Positions 11,201-30,790 of a DNA stretch of 64,000 nt are shown here, in pieces. The notes beneath the pieces were generated by a model. The model was given only the letters and a program-made list of their open reading frames with translations. It searched no databases and was not told where the DNA came from. Position numbers and translations under genes: made by a program. Source of the DNA: Macrostomum hystrix (lineage: Eukaryota; Animalia; Platyhelminthes); NCBI GenBank assembly GCA_950097015.1, contig CATNEN010000039.1, positions 20,398,001 to 20,462,000 of the forward strand, written 5' to 3'. The stretch's first letter is position 1. Each line of letters opens with the position of its first letter.

Positions 11201-12340
11201 ATTAAGTATAAAGTAAAATCGGAAGAGCTATTATTTATTGGGGTGTGCTCAGCCAATGAGGCAATATTACATGTCGAAGATAAAAAATCTATGAAAATGG
11301 AAAAGTTCAAACAGTCCAGTATTAGAGGTGGGGAAAATCTCAATGCAAACTTTTGTTATATAAAAAATGGACAATTAAAAATAGGATAGAATAGAGCATA
11401 TCCAAGTTGAGAAATGTACAGCGTCGGCAAAGATTAGAACACATTGACGGTTAGTGTTCAATGATGGTGAATTTTAATGGTGGCACTTCACTTGAACGAT
11501 AAAAAGTACAATTAAAGAAAAATAATTGGATGGACCGAATGAAGAAACTTCAAAGCGGTAAATTTTGTGTTTTTTGTGTCAAATAAATTCAATTTTATAA
11601 TTATTTTAATTTATGCTCAAATTTAAGTTTGAGCAAAATAGTGCCGGATTAGAAATATGCACTTAATCTCTGAAAAACGATGGTTTAGGAAAACTTGTTT
11701 AATGTTTTTTTAATTATAGCGGACGAAAGGATCGTAAGACTTAAATATAAAAATAAAAGTCTTTTCTTGAAACCTTCGAGTAAAAATATTAAATCAACAT
11801 GCATAGCTTACGAGCTTACTTCGAATATTATGGTGACGATAGTACTTTTCACGTGATTGGACTTAAAAATTAAGTTTCTGGAAAAAATGGGTGCGACGAA
11901 AACTCGGTTTATCTAGATGAGCTTCTTGGTCTTACATGTTCTTCGAGAACCATTACTATACTAATTCATACCATTATTATTATTATTGTTATTATTATTA
12001 TTGAAGTGCGCACACCGATTGGGTGCTGATTTTTTTGTTTATTTGATGTTGGTAACAAGGCTGCATACCAGCTACCAACTCTATATGTTTGTGAACTGAT
12101 AATGGTCGAATAAGTAAGTGGCTCGGACGTTGTTGTAAAGTCGTAATAATGGGCCCTGTGTCGTTGACATTAAAATCTACGACGTCAATCTCTCGAAACA
12201 ACGTTAGAAATTTCAATACTAAGGGAAAGAATCTCATGTTGACCAGGAAAGCTCACTCTAGAGAAATAAACAACGCCTTTCATTACGGACATAAACCAGC
12301 GAAAATGAACAAAAATTATAAATCGAATCTGTCTTCTTGC

Positions 12341-14073
12341 TCAATCAGAAGAAGTTGAATTCGGCAGCAGACGGTCAATCTTCTGAAAGATGTCTACAAC
12401 CTCTTTGTACCTGGTCACATAGGACTCTCGCATGATCCTGTGCGCGTGCTGCAGCTGCTCCAGGTTGGTGCTGAACTTGGCGAACAGGTAGTACTCCAGA
12501 AAGTCGGCGCTCTGATCCTCCTTCAGCTCGTTGAACCAATCATCCATGCTCTGCAGCTCCGGGAGAAGGACTGCTCGTAGGCACTTGAGCAGACAGTCAA
12601 AGTTCATGTAGTACGCTGACTCGTTCGGAGCAACTCTCGCAGGAAAGTAATCGGCGAGGTCCAGCGTATCACCTATCTCTCTCTTTAGCTCAGTCAGGAA
12701 CTTCAGCTTGGGTCGCTCATTGCTGTGGAAGCAGTGCTTCCAGGAGTAATCATTTTGGTAAATCTCGCCCTTGATGTGCATACGAATGACATTAAGGTTT
12801 CGTTCGCTGGAGAGCTGAGTGGGAAATGTGAGATAGCGTCTGACTCTGTGCTGCGCGCTGCATCTCAGAATATCTTTTGCGCCTTCCATTTCGCTTTTAA
12901 TTCTCACACCATTTTCGTCTTTTTGATTCCATCTCTTCAGTTTGTAGAGAACCTTTAAACCCTCCCGAACTGAATAGGCACAGTCCGGCATTTTTAATAC
13001 AAAGTCATAGAAAGCTTCAGTATTTTCTGGCTTTTCATTGCGACTAATTTCAGTCAATGCGTTCTCCATAAGCCTTTGAATATCGGCATAGCTTTGTAAT
13101 GGATACTGTTTTCTTACAGGGGGAAAGTACGGGAAAATGGTAAAAGGATGGTAGTAGAACGGCTCCTGGCATTGTCCAAACTGACTAATCCTGGCTCTTT
13201 TGTGCTTTAGTCTCTGAACATACTCGTCGACATGCTGTGGTAAATGTTTGATTAGCCGCTTGAGGCTTTGAATGACGCTTTGCTTGTTCGATTCGCCACC
13301 CTTCAGGTAAAGTCTAGCATCTTTCAAGAAGAAATGGCACATGATCTCAAATTCGCCTCTTTCAGGCTTCTTGATTTCTTCTAGAAGAAAATTTAGAGCT
13401 TCTTTTAGTAGTGAAAACAAGTTGGAATCATTCCAGTTTTCTTGTTTCGTATTTTGTATCATGAAAAATAGTACGGTTTTCGCGTGATATGATTTTAATC
13501 CAGGCGCTTCAATAGACACTACTTCCCTCAGTAGATACTTGAGCAAAATAAACAGCTCACCTTGAATTGGAAGCAGCCGGTGCATGATTTCCTTTTCTAA
13601 AAAACTTGTGCTTATCCTAAGCTCTAATTTCATTTGTTTGTCTTCATCATCTTGAGATTTCTGCACCTCATTTTCTTCACATTTTCTTTGAGATCGAACG
13701 AGATGAAGACTGTAGCATCGCTTGTTGCCTTCCAAGTCAGCTTTTGAACATTGCATTGATTTTCGCTCTATATCCTCAGTCATTTTTTCTTGTAAAACTG
13801 CTTTGAGTAGATCAGGGACGTCTCCAAGATGCTCGAACATTTCTTCCGTCACTTTGGAATGCTCTGATTTGAAACTTTGTTTCGCTTCGGCTATTGGAGA
13901 TTTCCGTCTTTTGGCGCCAAATCGCTTAAATGCATCCAATATAGACGGGCGCAGGTGGCCCGGATTTTGAAAAGGCTCAATTAAATGATGAGGTGCGCAA
14001 CATCGGAAAGCTGAGCAATGATCGATCGGAGGTCTCAGCTCTGACTTCATGGTTGTTTGCGCGGGATTCGACT
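12341..14073 (-). CDS. Last exon: third catalytic Asp region, Mab-21/cGAS C-terminal helical lobe and helical tail
   Basis: ORF 12341-14050 has PPIDHCSAFRC, LHLV, ELRISTSFLEKEIM, LFILLKYLL, GLKSYHAKTVLFFMI, W...L...L...L and CHFFLKDARLY in the canonical Mab-21 order. Confidence 0.88.
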
Positions 14074-17000
14074 CTGAAAATGTAATTGTTTAACTGTTTT
14101 TTTAATTGCTAAAGTTTAGTTTCACTTTTACTATTTTAAGTGAAGGGCAGTATTTGGTGCCTTACTCGTTACTAGTTACCATTATGTTAATGATCGTTGC
14201 TTTTTTGCAACGTTACTTTTCCCACTACCATGGGCTTGTAACAAAAACGATGGTAACGAGTCGTAACCAACAGTGTGCATTTCCCGCTGCCGGTTTTCGT
14301 TACCAGTTTCCGAAAAAAATAATAACATAGCAGAACTGTAAATTATTTCTTTTGCAGCAATTAAAACAGTTTTGTATTGTCTTTTTCTACTTAATAATGT
14401 AAAAGATAGTCAGGTTTATATAATTAGAAACTTTAGTTATATTTATGTAGTCATTAATTTTACAGATTAACGAATAACGATAGTTTTTTTTCATTACCGA
14501 TCGTTACCACCATCTCCGTTACTTTTTGGTAACGCGCCCAACACTAATGAATGGGATATATTTTTATTTCAGAATTTATGTGGGATTTGGGTAAGCTGGG
14601 ATTTGACTTACCAGCGTTAAAGCACAGTACGTGTCCTGCCTCGCACTTATACACTTTTTTAATATCTTTGCAACCGCAACCGTCGATGTGGAAGACTTCA
14701 GTCTTTATCAAATGAGTAAAATCGACATCGGACAGGTGAAAGATGCCGTTAATGCAATAAAGATTTGATCCCCATCCATCGGCAAAGCTTCCGCAGATGT
14801 GAATTTCATGAATTTCACTATTTAGTTCATTGATGAATTTCTCGTGAAGCTCAGCAACACAGCGCTGGATGAATGCTCTTGAAAAGCTGATGCCCGCTTC
14901 CAGCAGCGCATTGTGCAGCCTGGTGTTGTTGGCCTGGCCATTGGACATGGGTCGTTCAATATTTTGTTTGTCGGACTCCATAAATGTTCTCGTATCATCA
15001 GAATTGATGAATCTGAAAAGTTTGCGAATTAAAAAATGTTATTCTAAAGATTGCTAATTGTTATTGGTAAAACTAAAATAAACTGATGTTAAAAGAAACT
15101 TGCCCATCAGGTATGCCTGACTTGACAATAACATTTGGCCGTAATATATCAAGTTGGTGTAATATTGCATGCCTTGCATGTCTTTTCGACACTTTTATTG
15201 CCTCAGCGATCAAAGATTTTTTAGATTGCATTAGAATGGTATTTTTGAGAGCTTTGACGATTCCTGGTCGATCAAAAACAATAGCTAGTTGTAACGCATT
15301 AAACTTAATTTTGTTTTCCAGTAGCAAATTCACACTTCCGCTGGTCAGGAGCTTCTGAATAATTTCCTTCTGGTCAGATATCACTGCATGAAACAGGGCA
15401 GTGTTTCCGTCCTCATCCATCATTGAAATATTCGCGTTCAACTTCAGAAGCTCATTCACGCAACCTTGATGTCCATATCTGACTGATAGCATTATTGCGG
15501 TCATTCCATTATTATTAGGTTTGTCAATTACACTAGAATTCGCTAAATCCTGAATCACACGCTTGCCTAGCAGATTCACAACATTCGCATGACCATTTTG
15601 AGCAGCAATCATGAGCGCGGTCATTCCGTGCACATCAGTCTTTTCGAGGTCTGCATCATGCTCAATAAGCAGTTTAACAGTTTTATCAAGCCCTGATTTT
15701 GAAGCCATGTAGAGAGCTGTTTGCTTTTCGACGTTTGAAGCGTTCACTAATGCTCCAGCAGATAAAAGAAAATCAGCCACGATGTGATTTCCAATTTCAC
15801 ATGCGTTGATAAGGATCGTACTGTTATTCGCGTCTCTAGTATTTGCCTGTGTATCTGTCAGAATAAATTTCTTCAAGTTCGATTCGATTTCATTGTCTGT
15901 GACTGAAAAAGCAAGCCGCGATAGATTTAAGTACGAGTGCATCGCGCCTGCGTCACGTAACAACCGGAATACCTTCGACTCAGGATCAGCCACACTTAAA
16001 GCTGATTGGTCAGAGTTGTTCAATGCGTTTAAATTTACTCTGGCTGCAATTAGGAGCTGAACGATTTTTGCATTTCCTCTCCGGGACGCTATAATAAGAG
16101 GAGTGCAGCCATTCTTTCCGTCTAAATTAACATTAGCACCTGAGAAAATCAGTAAATCAACCATAGCTCTCAGGCCTTCCTGGCAGGATATGTGCAGAGC
16201 TGCTGCTCCATCAGACCTTTGTGAGTCTAGCTGAACTCCAGAGCCGATGAGATACTTGGCGAGCGTCTCGTTCCTAGAAAAACAGCTTAAAGTCAAAGGA
16301 GTATCACCCTCTCTTGTTTTAACATCGATATCTGCCTGACAGTCAATTAAAAATTTAGCGAGATTTTCGTGCTCGTTAGCCACTGCCCTGTGCAACGCCG
16401 TAGAGCCGCCCTTACCTGCTTCGTTGATATTGCCACCAATTTTCAGAATCATCTGAATAATGTCTCCGTGACCTCTTTGAGCGGCGAGATGCAGAGCAGT
16501 GTCCATGTCGTCATCCTGAAGAGCATAATCCGAGCCGGAGTCGATAAGTAGTTCGAATATTTCTGTTCGTCCATGGAAAGCTGCCAGTCCAAGCGCTGTT
16601 ATATGATTGTGGTCCTTTCGGTCTAAATTAATATTTGCGTGAATTAGCTGTTGAACAATTTGAAGGCTCTGGGACACAACTGCAAAGTGAAGAGCTGTAG
16701 AGCCGTCGTTTGTCGCAGCATGGACACTAGCTCCAGCAGCAGTCAGTAGTTGGAATGTTGAAAAATTGCCATTTAGTGCGCTGAGTAACAGTGGAGTGCT
16801 ATCATTCTTTCCAGTTAGCTCTAGATCAGCATTAGCTGAAATAAGTACTCGTACAATGTCTGTATGACCCCACTGAGCTGCCAAATGCAAGGCGGTTGCG
16901 CCATTTCTTTCTCTGAAATTTACGTTTGCTCCAGCTGCTAGCAGTCGATTAACTGGTTTGATTCGCCCGAAGTATGCGGAAATCATCAAAGCCGAGTTCC

Positions 17001-20000
17001 CTTCTGAATCATGACTGTCCACATCTGCTTTCGCACTGATCAACATGTCGATAATAGATTCAGCGCAAACTGCTGTCGCAATGTGAAGTGCAGTCTTGCC
17101 ATCTGCTGCTTGCAAATTCACATCACAACTATTCTCAATTAAAAACTTGACAATGCTCTCGTGTTGTTTTGCCACTGCAAGAATCAATGGTGTGGCCTGA
17201 CCCTTTCCTTGAGTATCGATCGCACACTGTGCCTGTACCAGCATCTTCACGATCTCTAAATGTCCGTTTTGAGCAGCTGAGTGTACAGCTGTGCCACCAT
17301 TCGAGTCTCGCATATTCTGATCCGCTCCTGCGTCGATCAGGAATCGAACAACCGCGTCTTTGCCGAAATAGGCCGCCATAATCAGTGCGGTATCGCCATC
17401 GCTGTCCTGCTTGTCGATCAAAGCCTTCGCTTTAACAAGACGCTTCACAATTTCAACATCACCACCCATCGCAGCAACAGCCAGTGCTGTCCTACCTTGC
17501 TCTGCATCTGCGTCAACTTCGGCATGTCTTTCAAGAAGAAGTTTTAAAACCTGATGGTGTTTATTGTGAGCGGCCAAAATCAATGGCGTCGCGCTACCTT
17601 TACCTTTGGAGTTCATGTCACTTCCTGCATCCAGAAGCAGCTCAGCAACCTCAAAGTGGCCACTCTGAGCTGCCATATGCAGTGCTGTGCTACCAAACTC
17701 ATCAGTAAGTCTGACATTTGCTTTCGATTCAATGAGCTGCTTAATGATATCCCGATTACTGTTGAATGATGCCGCCATCAGCGCCGTTCTTCCATCTCGA
17801 CTTTGAAGATTCGGATTAGCGTTCATTGCTAACAATCTCTTAACCACATCTGAATAACTGTACATGGCAGCCAGCATGAGAGCAGAGTATCCGTCTTTGT
17901 TCACCGCATCAAAATTAGCGCCATGCTTTAACAATAGATCAACGACATTTTGACGACCATTGAGGGCGGCTCGAATCAAGGGAGTCGTTCCATTCTTCCC
18001 TTCCAGGTCTGTCTTCGCGCCGTTTTCCAGCAAAAATCGCGAAATTTCCAGATGCCCTTCTTGAGCAGCAGAATGGAGAGCAGTGCATCCGTTGGTATCT
18101 CCATGATTTATTTCAGCATTGCTAGCCAGCAATTGTGAAACAACTACAAAATGCCCAAAGTGTGCGGACACAATCAAAGCGGTGTTGCCGTCACTGTTAG
18201 GGATGTTAGGATTGGCACCATTTGAAAGCAAGAACTCGGAAATCTTAAAATAGCCAAATAAAGAAGCGTAGAAAAGTGCTGTGTTTCCAAGAAAGTCTTG
18301 GTGATTTACTTGCGCCCCTGATTCAACCAACAGCTGGACTGCCTCTGCATGTCCCATGCAGCTGGCAAGTATTATAGGTATTGCATCACCTTTTCCGATG
18401 CAATTGACATTTGCACCTTTGCTTACAAGCCATCTAATGAATGCTGTGTGGCCCATTTGAGCAGAAAGCAAGATTGGAGTGGCTTTGTCGTTATCGGCAT
18501 CGTTCACGTCAGCAAAGGCAGTGACCAGCATCTCAGCCAAATCCAATTTGTTTAAAAATGATGTGAGTAGAATTGGCGAGTAACCAAATTTATTTTTTTT
18601 ATTCACACTTGCCCCGGCAGACAGAAGCATTTGTACTATTTCATTGGACGTACGGAAAATAGCATAAAATAATGCCGTGTTTCCTTTGTTATTTTGAATG
18701 TCAACGCTGGCTTTTGCTGATAGAAGAGCCTGAACACATCTCTGGTGCCCTGAATAAGTTGCAAGGATAAGTGCTGAATCCCCATCGTCCGTGACAGCGT
18801 TAACATAGGCATCGTGTCTGATCAAAAGCTGCACAATCTCAAAATGACCAAAGGTCGCGGCTAAAATAAGTGCTGTGGCACCGCCCTGACCTTTTGCATT
18901 CACATTCACTCTAGCTTCTAACAATATGTTCACGATTTCAATGTGACCATTTTGGGATGCGCAGTGCAAAGGGTTGTGCTTGCCTGCATCAGCGCCGTCT
19001 GCGTTGGCTTTGTATTGTAAGAGCAGCTTTACAATTTCTGTATGGCCGCTAAATGAGCTGCAGATTAATGGAGTTTCGCCTGCAGCATTCGCTAGATTAG
19101 GGTTGGCTCCATTTTCCAGTACACACTGGATTACTGAAATGTTAGCAGAAGCGATGGCCACCAAAAGCGGAGTAGTCAAACCAGAGATAAGGCTTTGATA
19201 ATTGATGTCTGCCCCGCAAACTATTAATAGAAATATGATGCTTAAATTTCCATTCAGAGTGGCCACATGAAGAGCTGTCAATCCCTGATCATCTTCATGA
19301 TTGATGGCCGAATTTGAAGCTGCATTCAGCAGCAATTCCGCAGATTCGAAGCACCCAGACGCGCAAGCTAGAATTAGAGCCGTGTCCTTTTTGTCACTCA
19401 CGGCATTTATATCTGCACCAGCGTCCAACAGCAGCTTCACAACCCTGGGGTGTCTATTAAAACAAGCGAGAAGCATTGGTGTGGCTCCGTTTTTACCATG
19501 CGAATTTATATCAGCACCGGCTTTTATTAGCAGATCAGCAATGTCTATGCTACCTTCTTGTACAGCGCAATGCAAAGGCTGGACCTGTTCGCTGCAACGA
19601 GCGTGAATATCAGCTCCGTAATCTATAAGCAGTTGAACTATTTGAGCACTTTTAGAGAACGCAGCAAAATGTAGGGCACTCAATCCATCTTCTTCTCTCG
19701 CATTAATTTTCACACCACATTTCAAAACGAGGCTAATGAGTCCCAAATCTTCGTTTCTTGCTTTCATACAGGCGACCATTAGACAGGTGAGTCCGTTAGC
19801 CATGACTTGGTTGACGTCAGCCCCAGATTTTACAAGAAATTCGAAAATTTTTGGCCTTTTATTTAAGCATGCAGAGAAAGCAGCCGTGCTCTTGTTCTTT
19901 CCAGGACCGTCTAGGCTGTACATCATCGGAGCCAAAAACTTCACTATTTCTAACGAGCCATTTTGAACAGCGCAATGAAGTGCTTGACATCCTTCAGCAT

Positions 20001-23000
20001 TGCGAGTTTCTGGATCCGCTCCTGCATTGATCAACAACTCGGCGGATTTTTCGTGACAGAAATATGAAGCAAGAATTAAAGCTGTATTACCATCTTTGTC
20101 CTGCAGATTAACATTCGCACCAGCTTTTATTAGAATTTCGATGATTTGGCTAAAGCCTTGGACTGAGGCCATCATCAATGCAGTCTGCTTATCGAAGTCA
20201 ACAGCATCCAATTCGGCCGAAGATGCTAAAAGCTTAAGAACGTCAGTATGTCCTCTCATTGCAGCAGTAATCAAAGGGGAATGACCGAACATTCCAATCT
20301 GTTCTGGATTTGCGCCAATGGAAAGTAGCTTTGCAACTATATCTGCCTGATTAAAAAAGCAAGAATAAAATAGTGCACCAGATCGGAAGCTACATTGATG
20401 GTCGATATTTGCTCCAGAATTAATCAGTTCAGCTAAAGTTCCAAGAGAGTTTTTGACAACAGATAGCGTCAAGGAAGTATCGCCACTGTCATTTGTGGCT
20501 TCAATGTCTGCCCAAGCTCTAATTAACTCCTTGACGATTTCGGTTCGACCGTTGAATGATGCGATCGTCAGTGGCGTATTTCCGTTTCTTCCTTTTATTT
20601 CTAGTTCAGCACCAGAAAGCAGGAGCAGGACTAAGATTCCCAAGTGACCATTTTGAGCTGCCATATAAATAGCAGTCGCTCCGTTGCTGTCCCTTAAGTT
20701 AGGATTTGCGCCAGCAGACAGAAGCAGTGCTACAGAGGTGAGCCTTCCGAAATAGGCAGCTAGTATCAGAGCACTGTCATTATCATCATCCTGGTAGTTC
20801 GTATCAGCACCGGCAAGAAGAAGAGCTGAAACAATGTCATTATGACCTTGAAGACAGGCTAAAATTAAAGCGGTGCCGCCACCTTTTCCAATCCAGTTCA
20901 CATCAGCTCCAGCAGCGATCAAGTAAGTAACGATTTTTGTGTGACCATTTTGTGCAGCAAGGAGTAGCGGTGTCGCAAGAGTTGCATCAACGTGATTTGG
21001 ATTAGCGTCCGCCTCAAGCAAGAGCTTTACAACTGTCTGTTGTCCAGTATATGCGGAATGAACGATCGCTGCTCTTCCCATGTCGTCGCAAGCATTCACA
21101 TCCGCATTATTTTCAATGAGCAGCGACACAATTTCACTATAGCCAATTGTGGATGCCAAGATTATTGGAGTGGAGCCTCCTTTGCCAACGACATTTACAT
21201 TAGCGCCTGCTGCTAAAAGCTGGCGAACTATGTCGATGTGACCATTCTGAGCGGCAGAAGAAAGCGCAGAATTCCCTTGATTGTCAACAGCGTTGATCTG
21301 AGCTTGGGCTTTTATTAATATTCGCACGATGCTCTGGAAGCCCAAGTACGATGCGATGATCAGTGGAGTGTTCCCGCCATCAGCTCTTGTGTCGCAATTC
21401 GCTTCAAAAGAGAGGAGTAGCGAAACAACATCCGGATGACCATTTTGAGCGGCGATGTACAACGAAGTTCCGTTTCCTTTTCCTGCCCAGTCAACATTTG
21501 CTCCGGCTTGCAGAAGATCTCTGCAAAGATCTAAGTATCCAATCTGAGCAGCCATCAACAATGGCGGGGCATTCTGATAGTCTGCAATGTCAACATTTGC
21601 ATTCGCTTTAATCAGCACTTTCGCAGCCGACCGGTGGCCACCCTGAACTGCAAGGCGCAGTGGGGTTCCATCTCCTTTGCCTTTCCAGTCGACCTTTGCT
21701 CCGGCAATCAGCAAAGCCTCGCAAATTTTTGTGTGTCCGTTCTGAGCAGCAAATATGAGCGGCGTTGCGTTTTGCATGTCTGCAGCATCCACCTCAGCTC
21801 CAGCGTGAATGAGCAGACAAGCCACGCCATAGTGGCCTTCGTATGCAGCGTAGTGAAGAGCCGTCTTGCCCTCAATGTTTCTGTTGTTTATTTCTTCTGG
21901 TTCGTTTCTTACAATTCGCTCTACATCTTCTTTATTGCCACTCCATGCAGCTTGCATTAGCTCAGATCTCTGTGTGGCTGCGAAAAGATTCATTAGATCC
22001 ATCGGCATCTCAAAAGACTTTTTTTCCTGTTTTCGCATTGGCATGAACTGTTCATGCTTAAACTTGGGGGCACTGCTATTTGTTGCAGTTTGCAAACTTG
22101 ATAAAATTGCATGGCTTCTTGTCTCAAAAGCAACATCGTGTATGGAGAGTCCGCTGCTGTCAAAGATGTCAGCGTTCGCGCCAGCTTCTAGCAGCTGTTT
22201 CACAATGGCCTCCTGACCAGCTTGAACAGCCAGCCAGAGAGCAGTCCTACAGAACTGATCGCGACTTTCCAGCAGCTCCTTGATGTGCGTCAGCTGACTG
22301 ACGATATCTTCGTGGCCCAGCTGCGCTGCTATCATCAGGGGCGAGCAACCGACTCCGTTGGCGATTCGAGGGTCGGCACCAGCCCGCAGCAACTGAGCTG
22401 CGATCTCTCTGTGCCCTCCCTGACATGCGAGAAGCAATGGGCTCGTCGCATTATTCTCAAGTATATTAAGGTCAGCGCGGGCCTCAATCAGCAGAGCGAC
22501 TATGTTTCCGTGACCGTTTTGAGTCGCAGCTGAAAGAGGCGACCTTCCAAAGTCGTCCTGAGCGTTGATCTCTGCGCCTCGTTCCAACAAGAGTTTGACA
22601 ATTGCTTCATGGCCATTTTGAGCAGCAAGCAACAAGGCTGAAATGGGTTTTTCTGGAGCTTTGAGATCCTTGAATCGGCCCATCAACATCTTGAGAAATT
22701 CTTCACGGCCATGCTCGCTTGCAGTGATGACGTGCCAGCTGAGATCCACATTGTCTGGTGCGCACTGCAGCACCAGCTGAATTAGACGCTGTTCTTCCGT
22801 TCTGGCAGCTTGTTCCATCAGCTCATCGAACTCTTCCAGTCCAAGTGTCTGAGGATTCTTTTGAACGAGCATCTCCGCGACAGCCACGTGATCTCCTCGA
22901 AGCGCTGCGACTAGCGCAGTCTCACCTTCTCTGTTTTTCACATCCAGCAGCGTCACAGGTGAGGTTAGGAGTGCCCGGACTGAGGCCTCTTGCCCTTCTC

Positions 23001-25920
23001 TGGCTGCCAGCAGCAGCGGCGTGTCTCCCGCGTCATCCGTCGCGTTCGCATCGAAGCCCGCTTGGAGGAGCTGCAACACTCGATCTGGCTGTCCCGCGCT
23101 ACTCGCCACGTGGAGTGCAGTCCGACCTTGGCGATTACGACGCGTGCCGAACTGGTTTTCTAAAAAATTGATTGTGTTTTTTGCTTTCTTTGATGTTCTC
23201 AAGACGCTTATAAACAAAAACCAGTCTATGCAGAAACCAAAATAACCGAGATTTTAGTTTTTTATATCTAATACGCTCGTAGATAGTTAAAGACTAGATT
23301 TTGTTGCTCAAATTTCTGGATTATAATGTCAAACCATGCATTACTAAAGTATCATCATGATGCAAATTTAAATGCATGCAAAAAAGCCCACGCAAAAAAT
23401 AAATGATTTTTTTCATGTAGCACTGATAGATGTGGTACGACGTAAAAAGTGACAATTAAAGTGACTTTGTTTTGTCAGCATCAATTAGTACAGAAAGTGT
23501 GATTGTTCATATACGATTGTAAAAGACTCAATAGATGTTCGTTTGAATACTACTGCGTATTAAGCAGTCAGTGAAGTTTGCTTTTTGTCTATTTCAATAC
23601 AAGTAATAATAATCATCTCACGCCCCGCGCCGATCACAAGTGGCCAAAAAAAGGGGGGCGTCAAATCGCGCGCTTCGGGGCAAGGTCTCTGACGTGCTTC
23701 ACGCCGGCTGCCTGGCTGGGTGCTCGCGCATCATCAAAAAGACGGTCGATGTAGCGAGCCGTTCGTCCCTGTCCGCGCCTGCGAGGTCCCTGCGGAGTCC
23801 ACAGCAGGACTTCCTGCAGCGGCTCTGGGCAGTAGGCTTCGGCCCGGATGACATGCCCGGCAAGCCGCAGACGTCGCTTGCTCAGCAGGGCAGAAAACCG
23901 CGTCAGGCGCGCTCGCTGGTACAGGGAGTCGGTCGTCTCGCTGCCAGGGCCGCGGCGAGCGCCGAACGCGGCACGAACCAGAGCCGCATGCGCCGCGTCG
24001 AGCTGCCCCTCGAGCGCCCCGGTCAGCGTCCAGGTCTCAGCATTGTACAGGAGGGCAGTCTCGACAACAGCCTGGAACAGCTGGGACCTGGCGCTGTCCG
24101 ACAGGGCTTCCGAGAGCAGCACCGGCCGAAAAGATCGAAAGGCGGCCCAGGCCTTGCCGCGCCGTCTCGCCAGGTCGTCGCTCACGTCCGGCACCAGCCC
24201 GCCGAGGTAGAGGAACTGACGGCACTTCGGGAGCACCGTCCCAGGGGCATCGCCGTCTCGGAGTCGGAGTCGGATCTCGGCGGGTAGATTGTGCGGCACC
24301 GTCATTAATACAAGTACAGCTGTCATTACGCTCGTAATTGCATTTTCAATTAAATTCAGTGTAATTCAATGCTCCATTCTGGTCCTGAAACAGATCATAG
24401 TCGCTATACTTGGCTCCAGTAGAACTCTGCAGCCACGCTAGTAGGCATAGTAACAAGTTCCCACTCCTGCATGCGACTGCATGAGTACCCGCAGCCATCG
24501 CCGCTATATGGTTTAGCTTAGTCTGAGTCCTATTTAGTTAAATATTAGATGGTGTCTTTAGGGTGTCAGTAATAGGAGAGCAGTGGCCGTTTTTCCACGG
24601 TTTTTCGGATTCAGCCTGCCTGAATCTTTTCAGCCAATGAGAGCCCGTGAATGGCTCCAGCCAATGGCAAGGCAGGAAGGGGTCCAAACCGTCTATAAAT
24701 ACGAGACACCCGAGAGCCCTAAAACTAAGACACCCGCCCCCTCGCCCCGTCGCACAACTGTGCTAAAGTCTTATACTTGAGTTTGGACTCACATAGTCTA
24801 ATTAATAAGGGGAGACGCAACACTTACGAGCTTTTATTTAAAGGCTGCGATATCAGTAATAAACAGACAATGCAAAGCGTTAGTACGAGCGTGCAAGCAT
24901 ATATCAACGTAGGAGTGTGACGAACTTACAATGCAGCACTCACTAAACAGTATGATGGTTATACGAGGCGTGATGCATCATTTTACATATATATGTCTAT
25001 TTAGTATGCTAATGCTCCAATACACTGGTGCTATATCTGACCAAACAATAAGGCCACATATAGCCTGCATTTTCTTAGGTCTCAAAGGTATGAGCATTCT
25101 CACAATAGTTGTTTACCTGCAAAGAGTCTAGGATAATTAGGCACCCTAAAACGTTGCATTTGAAAACGTCTGACAGAATGATACTAAATAGACACCAGCA
25201 CAATTCTGCGTGTTCTTGCATATGACAGTTTCATCTCAGAAAAGGAACTCTCAAAAGACAGAAAATATTCGTTTTTACGCATGGAAGTTTAAAAGACTCA
25301 AGACAGTTGAATAAACAAGCATACATATAGCACGCACTGCCTGTCAAATCATAATATTTTCAGAAAGCTTTACTCAAATAATAATAATTTGCAGAAGGGA
25401 TGCGGGCAATGGCACGTCATTAAATGGTGACATTAGACCCTCAGCCAGCGAGGAGGCAATTCTGCCCATTTCGCTGACTCCTGAGCACGCACGCACTCAC
25501 AGGTGTGTACATCTGCCCTGACTTTCTCATCATTAAGCAGTGTACACTCTCACTGTCCTTTGGAGGTTGGCACTTAGGGCTGTAAATTGCACACGACAAG
25601 CCCCTAAGCCTTCTTTAGCCTTGCTGTGCTAAGCCTTGCCAAGCCCCAAATAAATGCGGCCTCGCCGCGGAATCGAGCTCGGGGACCTTGATGCGAGAGG
25701 CAAACACGTTAATTGCTCTGCCGTCGACCCTCTTTAAAAAGCTTTTTGCAAGCCCCAGTCTACGATGAATGTCATTTATAGTTGACAAAATTAACTATGG
25801 ACAACTACGAACGTTAATATTAACAATAACAAAGAATTAAAGATACTTTACGAGCGTAAATTTCTACCGCGAAAACTGCTTCTCACCAACACCATCTTGA
25901 TCGTCCACTCCAGCCTCCAT
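12341..25920 (-). CDS. Giant ankyrin-repeat / Mab-21 (cGAS-like receptor, cGLR-type) nucleotidyltransferase fusion, ~3,407 aa. Exons 25920-25887, 23159-15104, 15012-14612, 14073-12341.
   Basis: Phase-compatible junctions: GTT G|gtgaga...tttttag|AA AAC (phase 1); GAT GG|gcaagt...ttttcag|A TTC (phase 2, GC-AG); GCT G|gtaagt...ttttcag|AG TCG (phase 1). Total 10,224 nt, a whole number of codons. NTase motifs ICGS...SDVDF...IDH; Mab-21 C-lobe LRISTSFLEKEI, LKSYHAKTVLF, CHFFL. Confidence 0.8.
14148..14546. mobile_element. hAT-like non-autonomous DNA element (MITE) in the intron splitting the NTase core
   Basis: Imperfect TIRs cagtatttggtgccttact / ggtaacgcgcccaacacta, internal gttac/gtaac repeats, and a degenerate 8-bp TSD gtgaaggg (14140-14147) / atgaatgg (14547-14554). 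Confidence 0.6.
14612..15012 (-). CDS. Exon encoding the N-terminal spine helix and nucleotidyltransferase GS / DxD motifs
   Basis: ...IHICGSFADGWGSNLYCINGIFHLSDVDFTHL..., bounded by a ttttcag acceptor and a gtaagt donor. Confidence 0.85.
15104..23159 (-). CDS. 8-kb single exon encoding ~75 tandem ankyrin repeats
   Basis: Uninterrupted 2,714-codon ORF with continuous 33-aa G-x-T-[AP]-L-[HI]-x-A-A-x-x-G-H...LL-x-x-GA-D/N-V-N repeats. The count is by length estimate. Confidence 0.96.
23606..24306 (-). mobile_element. 5'-truncated RTE-clade LINE (RT thumb / C-terminus and 3' UTR) in intron 1 of the ankyrin-cGLR gene
   Basis: FLYLGG, GKAWAAF, LLYNAETWTL, RRLRLAGHVIR and RRRGQGR motifs; (ATT)n tail; 10-bp TSD aatacaagta at 23596-23605 and 24307-24316. 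Confidence 0.9.
25385..25730 (-). mobile_element. tRNA-derived SINE family A
   Basis: About 350-bp repeat shared with copies at 34075, 43050, 46710, 47290 and 54680. The minus strand begins with A/B-box-like motifs and ends in (TTA)n. Confidence 0.8.
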
Positions 25921-26987
25921 GACGCGCCTAATCCTTCGACCGAGAGGTCAGCAGGGCAGGCGGCAAGGTCAACTCGTGTTCACTCTGAATAAAATTAGCA
26001 AAAAAGTTAGATTAGCAAAATAACTTTTGATAACGAGAAGTTGACTACGGCTCGCATATACTATGTGATTTCGGGTTATTTATCCCAATTCAGCTGCGTT
26101 CAGCAACTTCAAATAGTTTGTTACAAGGCACAATTGCAAATTTTTTTGTGTCATGAACATCTAGTACAAGTATAATACAGTCTAATTTCTAAAAACGAGA
26201 AGGTAAAAATATGAAAACGATTGGAATAAGGCTGTTGACAGTCGAATCTCATTTGAATTTTGAACGCTAAGTTTCGTAAAACTTACGAAAAGCACTTTCT
26301 ACCTTTCTCTGTGCTATCGAGGTGGGAAAATTATGCCCAAAATCACTTTAAAACCTGGTCGGTGTCGTTAATCATATTTTTAGGGACAGACACAGAAATA
26401 CTTTCTAAATTTTTAATCACTAAAGCCTTACAGTTTACGAGCCCTAACAATGTGGATAAACGCATAAAACAGAAGTGTCTTTAAAAATTCCAAGGCATTA
26501 TAATATTTGAAACTGGCTGTCCATAAAGAAGGCAATAAAATGTGCTTGTGCAGCTATTATCTGTGCATAACGAAGAACTTACTTATCGTATCCTTCTTTG
26601 TCAGTTAGTAGACATTATAATTATGTGTTATCAGAAGACAGAGTAGATTCACAAAAATATGATGTCCTTGTAATGATGATCAATTTCGGCTCAGTTTTAT
26701 GCGCTTATCCGCAGTTAAATGAACAAGGTACAAACATTAAAACGTAATTTGATTCTGTGTTTAGTGCTGTACTTTCTAACCCACGTTTACAGTTTAATGG
26801 TCGAGCGTAGCTTGGTTGGAGGTTAAACCGGGGGGTTGGGGGCTTGTGCATTGGTGCGGAGGTGCATGTACGTTGCCTGGTCGCGGGGCCGCCCCCCTCT
26901 TGGGGTCGGCCTTGCCCAGCCCTATTTAGTGTGGCGCGCTGTGCGCCGGCGCGTCTCTCCGAGAGGCTTATTGATTTTTTTTGTGCC

Positions 26988-28106
26988 ATGGCTGACCGTG
27001 AGAGCTTACTGCAGCTTCGCAAGGCGGCCTTGCAAGCGTTGTGCACACGCGCAAATGTTAGCAATCGCGGTAACAAGACCGAACTCGTCAGCGCCCTTCT
27101 ATCGGCTCCGGACCAGTCATGGACAGAGGCCTTGCAAAACTTGGAGCGGGGCTCAACAGGATCGAATGCAGATGACGAGATCGTGGCTGGGGCGGCTCGG
27201 GAATCGGCGGTGGGCCTGGACGAAGACATCGCGAAGGCGCAGAAGGAGATCAGACTGCTTCAGCTACGCAAAGAAGCTGCTCAACTAAGGAAGGAGATCG
27301 GCAGCCTGGAAAGCGAGCGTCCGACGGCGCAGCCGAATAACCGCAGTGAGTTTACCAGACCTGTTGACCCTGATTGCCTCTTTGAATTGCGGGATGATCA
27401 GGAACAAGAGCAAGAGAATCGCAATGAGCTGCTGGAAAGACTGCTGTTACAGGACAGGGCGAATCCGAGTGCCGCGTGCCCTGGCCGGCGCAAAGCTCTT
27501 CTGATTCGCGACTTCTTGGATGGTTTTGAGCAGAAAGAGGTCCTGGCTAATGGAGCTGGAGGGCGAATTACTTACAAGAGCAGAAAGCCGAGCCCTGACA
27601 GTATCACAGCAGCGCAGTACATGGTCGGCAATTGCAGACTGATGATGCGGATGATCAAGGACGGAGATTTAGTGATTGAAAAGAACGGATCTGTAGATAC
27701 CACCAATTTGATGAATTATCTGCGCTACTCGATCCAGATTGGCGAGCTGTTCGAGGCTGGCTTCAGCCTGGCTCAGGTGAACCGATTTGACGAAGACTAT
27801 CGCTGCAAACAGGCCGAGACCGGCATGCGCTGGGGCAAGGAGTCCTTTCAGCTTGTGGCGAAGCATTTGATCAAAGCCGGAGCTCCTGCCAATCCGGCAG
27901 CAAATAAGTCAGCATCGCAGTCTCGGCAGCAGCGCTTTCAGAACCAGAAGCCAATAGACCCCAGGAGCCTCAGGACCCCAGACGGGGAGGAAATCTGCTT
28001 GCATTTCAACCACAGGGGTTGCTTCCGGTCAAGTTGCAAATTCCGGCACATCTGCCGCATCTGCTTTGAGGCCCACCCTGAGGCCAACCACCCCACAAAA
28101 AACTAA
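26988..28106 (+). CDS. Gag-like ORF1 of the YR retrotransposon (N-terminal SAP/HeH-like motif, coiled coil, C-terminal Cys/His finger)
   Basis: MADRESLLQLRKAALQALC...GNKTELVSALL; FDEDYRCKQA...RWG; ICLHFNHRGCFRSSCKFRHICRICFEAHP. Confidence 0.85.
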   Translation: MADRESLLQLRKAALQALCTRANVSNRGNKTELVSALLSAPDQSWTEALQNLERGSTGSNADDEIVAGAARESAVGLDEDIAKAQKEIRLLQLRKEAAQLRKEIGSLESERPTAQPNNRSEFTRPVDPDCLFELRDDQEQEQENRNELLERLLLQDRANPSAACPGRRKALLIRDFLDGFEQKEVLANGAGGRITYKSRKPSPDSITAAQYMVGNCRLMMRMIKDGDLVIEKNGSVDTTNLMNYLRYSIQIGELFEAGFSLAQVNRFDEDYRCKQAETGMRWGKESFQLVAKHLIKAGAPANPAANKSASQSRQQRFQNQKPIDPRSLRTPDGEEICLHFNHRGCFRSSCKFRHICRICFEAHPEANHPTKN

Positions 28107-29701
28107 TAGCGGCGGTGCCCAATTTTAAACCCGAAAACCCGTCCAGTGAGTATCAATTTTATAATATCAATTTTATCAATCCAACTGCTCAGAGTGGAGG
28201 AGCTAGTCTGCGTTTTTGTTCGTGGAAGTCGGAGCTGTTGGATGATCCGGATCGCGATTTTATTTTAGACGGCATCGCTAATGGTTTTCGCATTACTGAT
28301 GGCGAATTGCTTTAGGAAACTTTTCATGCTAATTGCATGTCAACCGATGCTTATCATCGTGCTGTTGAGCTGCAGATTAAAGAGGAGATCGACAATGGAA
28401 GATACCTGGTGGTTGCCGAGAAGCCAACTATGATGAGCCCTCTTGGCGCCATTGCTAAAGACAATGGGAAAGTTCGCCTCATTCACGACTGCAGCAAGCC
28501 CATAGGCTGCTCGGTTAATGACAACTATTCGAAAAAGCTCAGCCCAAAGTTCGAGTCCGTCAAGGAACAAGGACCAAGGACCAAGGTCAAGGAAGGCTGG
28601 TTTATGGCTAAGCTCGATCTCTCCCAGGCCTACAGAAGTGTTGCTATTCACCCGGAGGACTATCAGGCGACTGGCATTGGATGGCGTTTTAAAGGCAGTC
28701 AAGACCTGACGTGGCTCGTTGACACACGGCTGCCATTCGGTAGCTGCGCCTCGGTCGAGATTTTCTACCGACTGACCCAGGCGGTCAAGAGAATGATGGT
28801 GCGGCGTGGCCATAGCAACGTGTCAGTCTACCTGGATGACTTCCTGGTTGCCGCGGAGAGTAAGGAGGAGTGCATGAAGGCCCTTAACGAGCTGATCAGG
28901 TTGGTACGCGAACTCGGATTTGGCGTCAACTGGAGCAAGCTGGTGGAGCCAACTCAATGTCTGGTGTACCTCGGAGTTAAGATCGATACCGTGCGTGGCG
29001 TTCTCGGTATTCCGGCTGAGAAGTGTGAGGTGTTGCGCGATACTCTGCTTAGCTTCTCGCAGCGTAGGCGCCTCTCGAAGCGCCAGCTTTCGTCGCTCTG
29101 TGGCAAGCTCAGTTGGGTCATTCAGGTGGTGCATTCTGGGAGCTGTTTCCTCAGGCCCCTGTTCGACTTGCTAAATGCTCTTCAAAAGCCACATCACAAG
29201 ATCCGCGTTTCCGCTGACACCGTGCGTATTTTATTCTGGTGGCGTAGCGCCCTTCTGCAGTTTCCTGAGTTTCAGCTTTGGACGCGTCATTCGAATTCCT
29301 GGGTCATCGAGACGGATGCCAGCAGTGTTGGTGGTGGCGCTATTTTGCGAAATGCTAACGGCATGATTGATTGGCTGTACGTCAACTGGGAACTGGATGC
29401 CGCAGGAGTGTTCAAGGACATGCATATCACGTACAAAGAAGCCATTGTTCCTCTCCTGGCGATGGTGCGCTGGAGTGCTTTGCTTAATAATAGTTCTGTG
29501 GTGTTCTACTCTGACTCTAGCGCCGCTGTCGGCATGATTAATAGAGGTTGCTGCCGCAAGTCTGAGTTACAGCCGCTTTTTCAGACTGCCATGCTAATCG
29601 CAGTTAGGCGCGGTGTCGAAGTTCGTGCGTTTCATGTGCCTGGTTGGTACCAGCTTTTCGCAGATCCGTGCTCTAGACTGCACACTGTGTGCAAGATGTG
29701 A
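28082..29701 (+). pseudogene. Reverse transcriptase + RNase H of the YR element, with an in-frame TAG at 28313-28315
   Basis: FILDGIANGFRI, SPLGAIAK, KVRLIHDCS, AKLDLSQAYR, LPFG, VYLDDF, YLGVKID, IETDAS, FYSDS, ADPCSR. ORFs 28115-28315 and 28337-29701 share a frame. Confidence 0.9.
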
Positions 29702-29716
29702 GACTTTTTATTTCGT

Positions 29717-30790
29717 GTGTATGGAACAGTTAACTGTAGCGCTACTGAAATTGCAAGCCACGCTTTCTGCCGTTCTGCTTCCGCGTTTCTCTTTTTGCAG
29801 GCCGCTCCCGACCGGCTCAGCCAGCGCTGCGCATTTCTCCTCGGCAATGCATTCGCTCCCCACACGAAGCGGAGTTACCGGTCGCAGCTCGCGTCCTGGT
29901 TGCGTTTCTGCAGTTCCAAGCGCTTGACACCAGCCCGAGCGCAGCCGGTACACGTGGCTGAATACCTGGCTGAGCTGTCCAATCGGCTAACCGCTTTCCG
30001 CAGTTGCCATGCGTATGCGAACGCAGTCTCTTTGTACTTCAGAGCGATTGGTCGGCCGGACCCGTGCGAGACACCGATGGTCAAGTGGGTGCTTCGCGGC
30101 CTTCGCCGGTTTCTCGGTCGACAACAGCAATCGAAGGAGCCAATCCGAGTCGCCGATCTTCTCAAGCTGCACGCCTATCTTGACCAGAAATCACGCAAAG
30201 ACATCGCTTTCTGGTCGGCGATTCTGACGGCCTGGTGGGGAATGCTGCGAAAGGCGAATGTCACCACGCAGGCAGGGGAGCTCGATCTGGTGCGCGATTT
30301 GTCAGCGTCGAGTGTCACCTTCTCGGAGCGCGACTGTGAGCTGGTAATGAAGCATTCCAAGACGAACCAGTTTGGCAACAGAGTTCAGCGTGTGTTTCTC
30401 CCGAAGCTTCCGGATGGCGGGCTAGAGGCCATTTGCCCGTACCGAGCTCTGAAGCAGCAGCTGGCCGCCAACCTGGTGGATCAAGCCCCTGGTCCTGTTC
30501 ATCTTTTTGCGACCAGGTCGGCGAACGGGTGGACGGCCCTGACAGCTAGCGGTTTCGATGGCCGCCTCCGATCTCTGTGCGCTGCGGCGGGTTTTTCGCC
30601 GCGTGTCTTCACAGGCCATGGGCTGCGGCGTGGCGGCGCTACGACGGCGATGCAGCTCGGTGTTCCTCTGCCGGTAATCAAGCAGCTCGGTGACTGGAAG
30701 AGCGGCTCTGTGTTTCGCTATCTGTCTGTGCAGGACTCGGATGCAAGGGCAGCCGTGCATGGGCTGGCGCGTCGCCTGGGCGCTCTCTAA
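29717..30790 (+). CDS. Tyrosine recombinase (phage-integrase family) of the retrotransposon; start uncertain
   Basis: AFAPHTKRSY, GMLRKAN (catalytic R), HSKTNQ (K), GHGLRRGGAT (HxxR), LGDWKS (W), FRYL (Y). Confidence 0.93.
   Translation: MYGTVNCSATEIASHAFCRSASAFLFLQAAPDRLSQRCAFLLGNAFAPHTKRSYRSQLASWLRFCSSKRLTPARAQPVHVAEYLAELSNRLTAFRSCHAYANAVSLYFRAIGRPDPCETPMVKWVLRGLRRFLGRQQQSKEPIRVADLLKLHAYLDQKSRKDIAFWSAILTAWWGMLRKANVTTQAGELDLVRDLSASSVTFSERDCELVMKHSKTNQFGNRVQRVFLPKLPDGGLEAICPYRALKQQLAANLVDQAPGPVHLFATRSANGWTALTASGFDGRLRSLCAAAGFSPRVFTGHGLRRGGATTAMQLGVPLPVIKQLGDWKSGSVFRYLSVQDSDARAAVHGLARRLGAL

Follow-up and report, generated by a model that had tools for sequence, protein, structure and literature searches.

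A giant ankyrin-repeat array joined to a predicted cGAS-like nucleotidyltransferase in the flatworm Macrostomum hystrix

Among about 3,000 animal cGAS-like receptors (cGLRs) surveyed by Li et al. (2023; 10.1101/2023.02.22.529553), 87% consist of a single domain, and fusions to tetratricopeptide repeats (TPR) or ankyrin repeats form minor classes. The ankyrin-fused type (ANK-cGLR) is listed as a domain architecture in Fig. 1C of that paper; its Table S2 contains ANK-cGLRs of Macrostomum lignano and ANK-cGLRs of other invertebrates with ankyrin matches beyond residue 2,100, and according to its Table S3, five M. lignano proteins of the family studied here, with the same motifs, were cloned for the biochemical screen. 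Here, we analyze a gene of the congener Macrostomum hystrix, found in a stretch of 64,000 nucleotides that we call the window (C39:20398001-20462000, contig CATNEN010000039.1, of a 220-Mb assembly in 42 contigs; other coordinates refer to the window unless a contig is named). Transcript contigs join its ankyrin exon in frame to nucleotidyltransferase (NTase) exons, which is the ANK-cGLR architecture. We consider it likely that this is one expressed gene encoding about 73 ankyrin repeats, a predicted cGLR-type NTase with intact catalytic-type residues and a TPR-like domain, and that its product would act as a sensor of the innate-immune type. A preliminary description of the locus, made from the sequence alone, had put the gene forward as a candidate novel sensor. 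As ANK-cGLR fusions already figure in the list of Li et al. (2023), who also cloned five family members from M. lignano, the claim of novelty falls: the gene is a new, extreme member of an already described class, and its unusual feature is the size of the array. Our literature search turned up no work on Macrostomum cGLRs and none on what any ANK-cGLR fusion does.

That the ankyrin array and the Mab-21 part belong to one mRNA follows from assembled contigs that skip both introns between them exactly. Four sequencing runs of one study hold 74% of the sampled words of 12341-15200, a share close to the exon fraction of that stretch, and contigs assembled from three of these runs (X2, X3 and X5) were aligned to 11900-17800. 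Each run yielded one long contig (7,346, 7,857 and 10,322 nt), with 0 mismatches over 4,926 aligned bases; all three omit precisely 14074-14611, whose plus-strand ends are CT..AC, and 15013-15103 (CT..GC), and they end at 12226-12246, about 100 nt beyond the stop codon. The longest exceeds the 10,293 nt of exons 2-4 by 29 nt, an excess compatible with the modelled exon 1 but no demonstration of it. If the ankyrin and Mab-21 reading frames were instead two genes, with the junction a product of read-through or an assembly artefact, the ankyrin frame's own stop codon at 15073-15075 would have a natural explanation, and the contig data are compatible with a minor isoform that may retain the 91-nt intron in which this stop lies. 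Against such a division, three independently assembled contigs remove that intron, at GCAAGT...CAG and in frame, and the order of ankyrin repeats followed by NTase recurs both in M. lignano homologues and in 12 of the 13 paralogues examined. Transcripts ending after the ankyrin stop, which the preliminary description had named as the outcome that would overturn it, were not seen, as the contigs run through into the Mab-21 part. The division into two genes is thus largely refuted, and we regard it as highly improbable.

The preliminary description had further reported three open reading frames (ORFs) and their in-phase splicing, with a short first exon, into a protein of about 3,407 aa. The ORFs are indeed present on the minus strand, at 15073-23217 (2714 aa), 14544-14981 (145 aa) and 12341-14050 (569 aa); junctions 15104|15012 and 14612|14073 are borne out by the contigs, and junction 25887|23159 is in phase by sequence reading. 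The resulting gene model is as follows.

25887..25920, minus strand: modelled coding exon 1 (ATG, 34 nt, GT donor at 25886), from sequence reading; in phase with exon 2
23160..25886, minus strand: intron 1 (modelled), containing a dispersed repeat of about 700 bp
15104..23159, minus strand: exon 2, ankyrin array, 2,684 whole codons; Pfam Ank, E=0; covered by contigs up to 17800, the part compared
15013..15103, minus strand: intron 2, 91 nt, GC-AG; skipped exactly by contigs of X2, X3 and X5; contains the ankyrin-ORF stop codon
14612..15012, minus strand: exon 3, predicted NTase N-lobe; matches the same homologues as exon 4; contig-covered
14787-14792, minus strand: GS of exon 3, from the family alignment
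14721-14729, minus strand: DVD of exon 3, from the family alignment
14670-14678, minus strand: CxC of exon 3, from the family alignment
14631-14633, minus strand: conserved His of exon 3, from the family alignment
14074..14611, minus strand: intron 3, 538 nt, GT-AG; skipped exactly by contigs of the three runs
12341..14073, minus strand: exon 4, coding part; Pfam, AlphaFold2 model and structure searches
14021-14023, minus strand: third catalytic-type Asp, in exon 4, from the family alignment
13997-14002, minus strand: conserved CC, in exon 4, from the family alignment
~13727-13939, minus strand: lineage-specific insert, in exon 4, from the family alignment and model
13271-13549, minus strand: Mab-21_C, in exon 4, from Pfam
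12344-13114, minus strand: TPR-like helical C-terminal domain, in exon 4, from structure search
12341-12343, minus strand: stop codon, from sequence
12226..12340, minus strand: 3' untranslated transcript end; contigs X2, X3 and X5 stop at 12246, 12226 and 12238

The reading frame is kept across all three junctions, and together the four coding exons comprise 10,221 nt, or 3,407 codons. Read base by base, junction 25887|23159 is a GT..AG junction in phase 1 with donor GTGAGA, exon 1 ending at the first base of a codon and exon 2 beginning after TTTTTTAG. Junction 15104|15012 is GC..AG in phase 2 (donor GCAAGT, acceptor TTTTCAG), the upstream exon ending at the second base of a codon, and junction 14612|14073 is GT..AG in phase 1 (donor GTAAGT, acceptor TTTTCAG), the upstream exon ending at the first. 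An upstream start exon is needed because the first methionine of the long ORF is residue 116, and a start there would drop the first three ankyrin repeats. Trans-splicing was considered as a replacement for exon 1, the M. lignano spliced leader ending in ATG, and was rejected: with an ATG directly adjoining the acceptor at 23160, translation would miss the ankyrin frame. The repeat inside intron 1 (23604-24305) occurs at least 40 times in the genome, the copies being 84-98% identical (246 first-look candidates), and its ORFs on both strands gave no Pfam match; a non-autonomous transposable element is the probable explanation. Immediately 3' of where the transcript ends, at 12009-12063, lies a short repeat to which many unrelated contigs align with loose ends.

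The exon-4 product matches Pfam Mab-21_C (PF20266) with 33.2 bits against a cut-off of 24.1. The exon-3 product finds its matches in the same proteins, some 80 residues upstream of where exon 4 matches, and, the order being the same, the two exons are collinear with uninterrupted homologues. Across 26 compared family modules, diverged to about 30% identity, the catalytic-type residues stand out as follows.

GS motif: VVGS-x-EGWG in the family, ICGSFADGWG in the window gene; G in 26/26 and S in 25/26 modules
DxD motif: SDIDV in the family, SDVDF in the window gene; first D in 25/26 and second D in 24/26 modules
Third Asp: LRPAxD in the family, LRPPID in the window gene; D in 22/26 modules

The window gene keeps all of them; the motifs were mapped to cGAS residues via the topology of the model of a whole natural homologue, P0003, and not by residue-level superposition. 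The family also conserves Cys-x-Cys, His and Cys-Cys positions of the N-lobe (23-25 of the 26 modules), a set that suggests a structural metal site located elsewhere than the zinc thumb of cGAS.

Structure comparisons lead to the same group of proteins. A family profile searched against all PDB sequences matched only cGAS and cGLR1; the exon-4 product alone had given nothing but chance matches to Crl, and the profile was needed. For the exon-4 product of the window itself, AlphaFold2 gave a model that is confident at residues 150-290 and 330-570, and its best matches are MAB21L1 (Z score 12.7), Sp-cGLR1 (12.2), MB21D2 (11.7), the Tribolium cGLR (11.7), Cv-cGLR1 (11.4) and cGAS (10.2), the next unrelated row coming at 7.9; the top Foldseek matches are all MAB21L1, cGAS or cGLR. 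The model of P0003 (AlphaFold2, predicted local distance difference test score 88.6) aligns with full-length cGAS over about 350 columns (E 5.6e-7) and also matches Cv-cGLR1 and MAB21L1. In it, GS, DxD and the third Asp lie on helix-β1-GS, β2 and a later β-strand, as expected of a Pol-β-type transferase. A palm domain resembling that of MTPAP is weakly matched in 5 of 36 family members (best E 5e-4). With Mab-21_C above its cut-off and both models matching cGAS and cGLR folds, the assignment of the C-terminal part to the Mab-21-fold NTases, made in the preliminary description together with a call for Pfam and AlphaFold-Foldseek comparison against cGAS, MB21D2 and cGLRs, has stood up. Residues 322-574 of the exon-4 product form a TPR-like helical repeat with matches at Z<=7.8, none of them specific, and a search of the ESM Atlas with this C-terminal domain gave no usable match.

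As the C-lobe has both MAB21L1 and MiD49 among its best structural matches, one may ask whether the Mab-21 module, like its counterpart in MAB21L1 or MiD49/51, serves for binding or scaffolding without catalysis, and whether the whole protein is a giant ankyrin scaffold, for example on the cytoskeleton or a membrane, that makes no second messenger. The charge of the NTase module, near neutral with 101 K+R and 100 D+E, would suit such a role, unlike that of the basic cGLRs that sense nucleic acid (pI > 8.5; Li et al. 2023). However, Li et al. (2023) describe Mab21L1/2/3 as lacking a predicted functional active site, and in the window gene, a loss of catalytic acidic residues of the MAB21L1/2 type is not seen: GS, DxD and the third Asp are kept here and in 22-26 of the 26 modules in spite of identities around 30%, which is unexpected for a pseudoenzyme. 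We therefore find a pure scaffold unlikely and continue with a probably catalytic module as the better description.

Charge also bears on the ligand. In the account of Li et al. (2023), the cGLRs with known ligands all sense double-stranded DNA or RNA via the back face of the NTase, and some acidic cGLRs probably sense other ligands. The gene could, in this light, encode a conventional nucleic-acid sensor whose array only localizes or oligomerizes the enzyme and has no part in ligand recognition, and the isoelectric points (pI) of the exon-4 piece alone (8.6) and of its Mab-21_C segment (9.5) would fit. The module as a whole is nevertheless charge balanced, which on sequence composition appears uninformative to mildly unfavourable for nucleic-acid sensing, and the array has a strongly acidic composition (pI 5.7, net charge about -67). 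Furthermore, 12 of the 13 paralogues examined keep an array, which argues that it is integral to the function of the family. A sensor of this conventional kind thus seems quite improbable.

The array itself was estimated at about 75 repeats in the preliminary description; our self-built repeat model finds 73 in the exon-2 product (68 at E<0.01) and Pfam Ank 62 stretches. According to the self-built model, the repeats fall into four blocks.

22843-23136, minus strand: block of 3 ankyrin repeats
22168-22641, minus strand: block of 5 ankyrin repeats
16024..21879, minus strand: central uninterrupted run of 59 ankyrin repeats, spacing 32-36 residues, almost always 33
15247-15780, minus strand: block of 6 ankyrin repeats

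Identity between repeats averages 29% pairwise and reaches at most 61%; pairwise repeat comparison revealed no periodicity, and Tandem Repeats Finder returned 0 rows for tandem repeats at the DNA level in the array. Given these three observations, the array is old and its repeats have diverged individually; the absence of Tandem Repeats Finder rows rules out a recent expansion at the DNA level or an assembly artefact as its origin.

The gene belongs to a large family. A full HMMER search with the exon-4 product returned 147 relatives; ten of these, including nine of the best ten, were looked up, and every one is an M. lignano protein. Ankyrin repeats are borne by 22 of 36 aligned members, and most relatives checked have them upstream of the module. 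Among public sequences, the best match is P0002, a fragment of 114 aa from M. lignano with 86% identity, probably the orthologue in that congener. Within the genome to which the window belongs, at least 76 matches to the exon-4 module were scored (from 166 first-look candidates), the closest paralogue sharing at most 36-41% identity with the window gene. Upstream of the module, 12 of the 13 paralogues examined carry 9-21 ankyrin repeats, so that the array of about 73 repeats is 3-8 times larger than theirs, and in the paralogues examined, an intron falls at the profile position of intron 3 (~137). The gene is a divergent, oversized member of an ANK-cGLR expansion in the Macrostomum lineage.

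Six module matches lie within about 170 kb on contig C18 (18379-186544) and several more on C3 (10.2-11.7 Mb), groupings that suggest tandem clusters of paralogues. Two other large relatives are not comparable: P0048 (3,379 aa) has only a few ankyrin repeats, and P0010, a combination of Delta-like and Mab-21_C parts, looks like a chimeric gene model. In another relative, P0043 of M. lignano (1099 aa), the cGLR module (residues 1-555) precedes ankyrin repeats and a caspase domain (Peptidase_C14, E 2.7e-25); this protein is a fusion of sensor and effector or else a chimeric gene model. Just upstream of the window gene, at 26844-30790 on the plus strand, three consecutive ORFs of 420, 454 and 357 aa form what looks, from its coding content, like a DIRS-like retroelement, the second ORF matching reverse transcriptase (RVT_1, E 1.4e-16) and the third a tyrosine recombinase (Phage_integrase, E 1.5e-6).

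In the mechanism that we think most likely, a STING-like receptor would read the nucleotide messenger. The preliminary description had called for a genome search for paralogues and STING-like receptors; it was productive for the modules, and for STING, it gave one weak candidate as the sole match in the genome, an open frame of 337 codons with a divergent STING_LBD-like domain (C2:9104529-9104996, minus strand; E 1.4e-5). This frame carries the motif LRLILPKL, and its weak sequence matches in the PDB (E 0.06-1) are STING proteins in 14 of 14 cases.

Several points weigh against an expressed, catalytically active cGLR fusion. The STING_LBD match, at 25 bits, is below the Pfam cut-off of 27. The sequencing runs carry no RNA label and all contigs come from one study; we infer that the runs are RNA because each yields about 42-46 Mb of contigs, compared with a 220-Mb genome, introns are removed exactly and the 3' end is plausible. 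Exon 1 is modelled from sequence and lies outside the transcript check. The N-terminal Mab-21 model of Pfam, PF03281, has no match at E<=1 to the exon-3 or exon-4 products and is absent from the list of the 25 families matched most often among the 36 aligned members; the failure reflects the divergence of the family from the profile and concerns the Pfam model, not the fold. For the N-lobe, which in the window protein is split over exons 3 and 4, the predicted fold is taken from the homologue. Finally, Li et al. (2023) saw no in vitro activity for most cGLRs of their screen, which they consider likely to reflect activating ligands not yet known, and the main text of that paper, in which the 15 active enzymes are not listed by species, names no M. 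lignano protein, a silence that would also suit a scaffold.

The preliminary description had proposed that a ligand-sensing array could gate the synthase, a reasonable suggestion. Going further, and with considerable doubt, we suggest that the 59-repeat solenoid may itself be the sensor, of a pathogen or host protein or of mechanical load, and would allosterically release the cGLR to make a nucleotide signal, the paralogues representing a diversified repertoire. If this were true, the Macrostomum ANK-cGLR paralogues, with at least 76 cGLR modules and an array in 12 of 13 examined, would form a repertoire sensing ligands other than nucleic acid and functionally analogous to NLRs, in a phylum from which cGLR signalling is reported to have largely disappeared. 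The question has wider relevance, as ligands other than nucleic acid are an open question for cGLRs in Li et al. (2023), where the ankyrin-fused types appear without a reported ligand or activity. The present genome provides a concrete test case, combining an extreme, transcript-supported array, paralogues with 9-21 repeats, intact catalytic-type residues and a candidate STING. Macrostomum worms are amenable to RNA interference and transgenesis.

Compared with known systems, the window gene is closest to the M. lignano ANK-cGLRs (PAA86972.1, PAA45980.1 and PAA68676.1; UniRef A0A1I8GXZ3, our P0001), with which it shares the succession of ankyrin array, NTase, Mab-21_C and helical C-terminal domain and motifs of the type GSxxEGWG...SDxDV...PAxD, at a module identity of 33-37%. 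The relatives checked are 1,100-1,400 aa long, in contrast to 3,407 codons and about 73 repeats here, and lack the insert of about 70 residues that the window gene has in its NTase core. By their table entries in Li et al. (2023), other invertebrate ANK-cGLRs (Stylophora pistillata; XP_027209269.1, with ankyrin matches up to residue 2193) are also similar, combining a cGLR core with ankyrin repeats, some at more than 2,000 aa. With human and mouse cGAS, Sp-cGLR1 (8gjy), Cv-cGLR1 (8gjw), the Tribolium cGLR (7lt2) and MB21D2 (7lt1), the gene product would share the bilobal Mab-21/cGAS fold, as judged from models, and with the structurally solved cGLRs, it shares the GS, [DE]x[DE] and third acidic residue. 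Identity to the solved cGLRs is only 14-21%, and they are single-domain proteins, about 350-520 aa in length, whose ligand is nucleic acid or is not known, whereas in the window gene, the enzyme part is preceded by an N-terminal array of about 2,700 aa and followed by about 250 aa of a TPR-like domain. MAB21L1/2, the best structural match to the C-lobe, differ in having no predicted active site. NLR and other STAND sensors have a central NACHT or NB-ARC ATPase, and no Pfam family of either kind was found in any of the three exon products; without such a module, the "NLR-like" design of the preliminary description stands as an analogy of design logic only. As for the array, long ankyrin solenoids such as ankyrin-R/B/G (24 repeats) and NOMPC (29 repeats) are likewise uninterrupted stacks of 33-residue repeats, but the 59 uninterrupted repeats found here would make a stack about twice as long, and while those proteins are membrane adaptors or channel tethers, the Macrostomum array is fused to a predicted enzyme.

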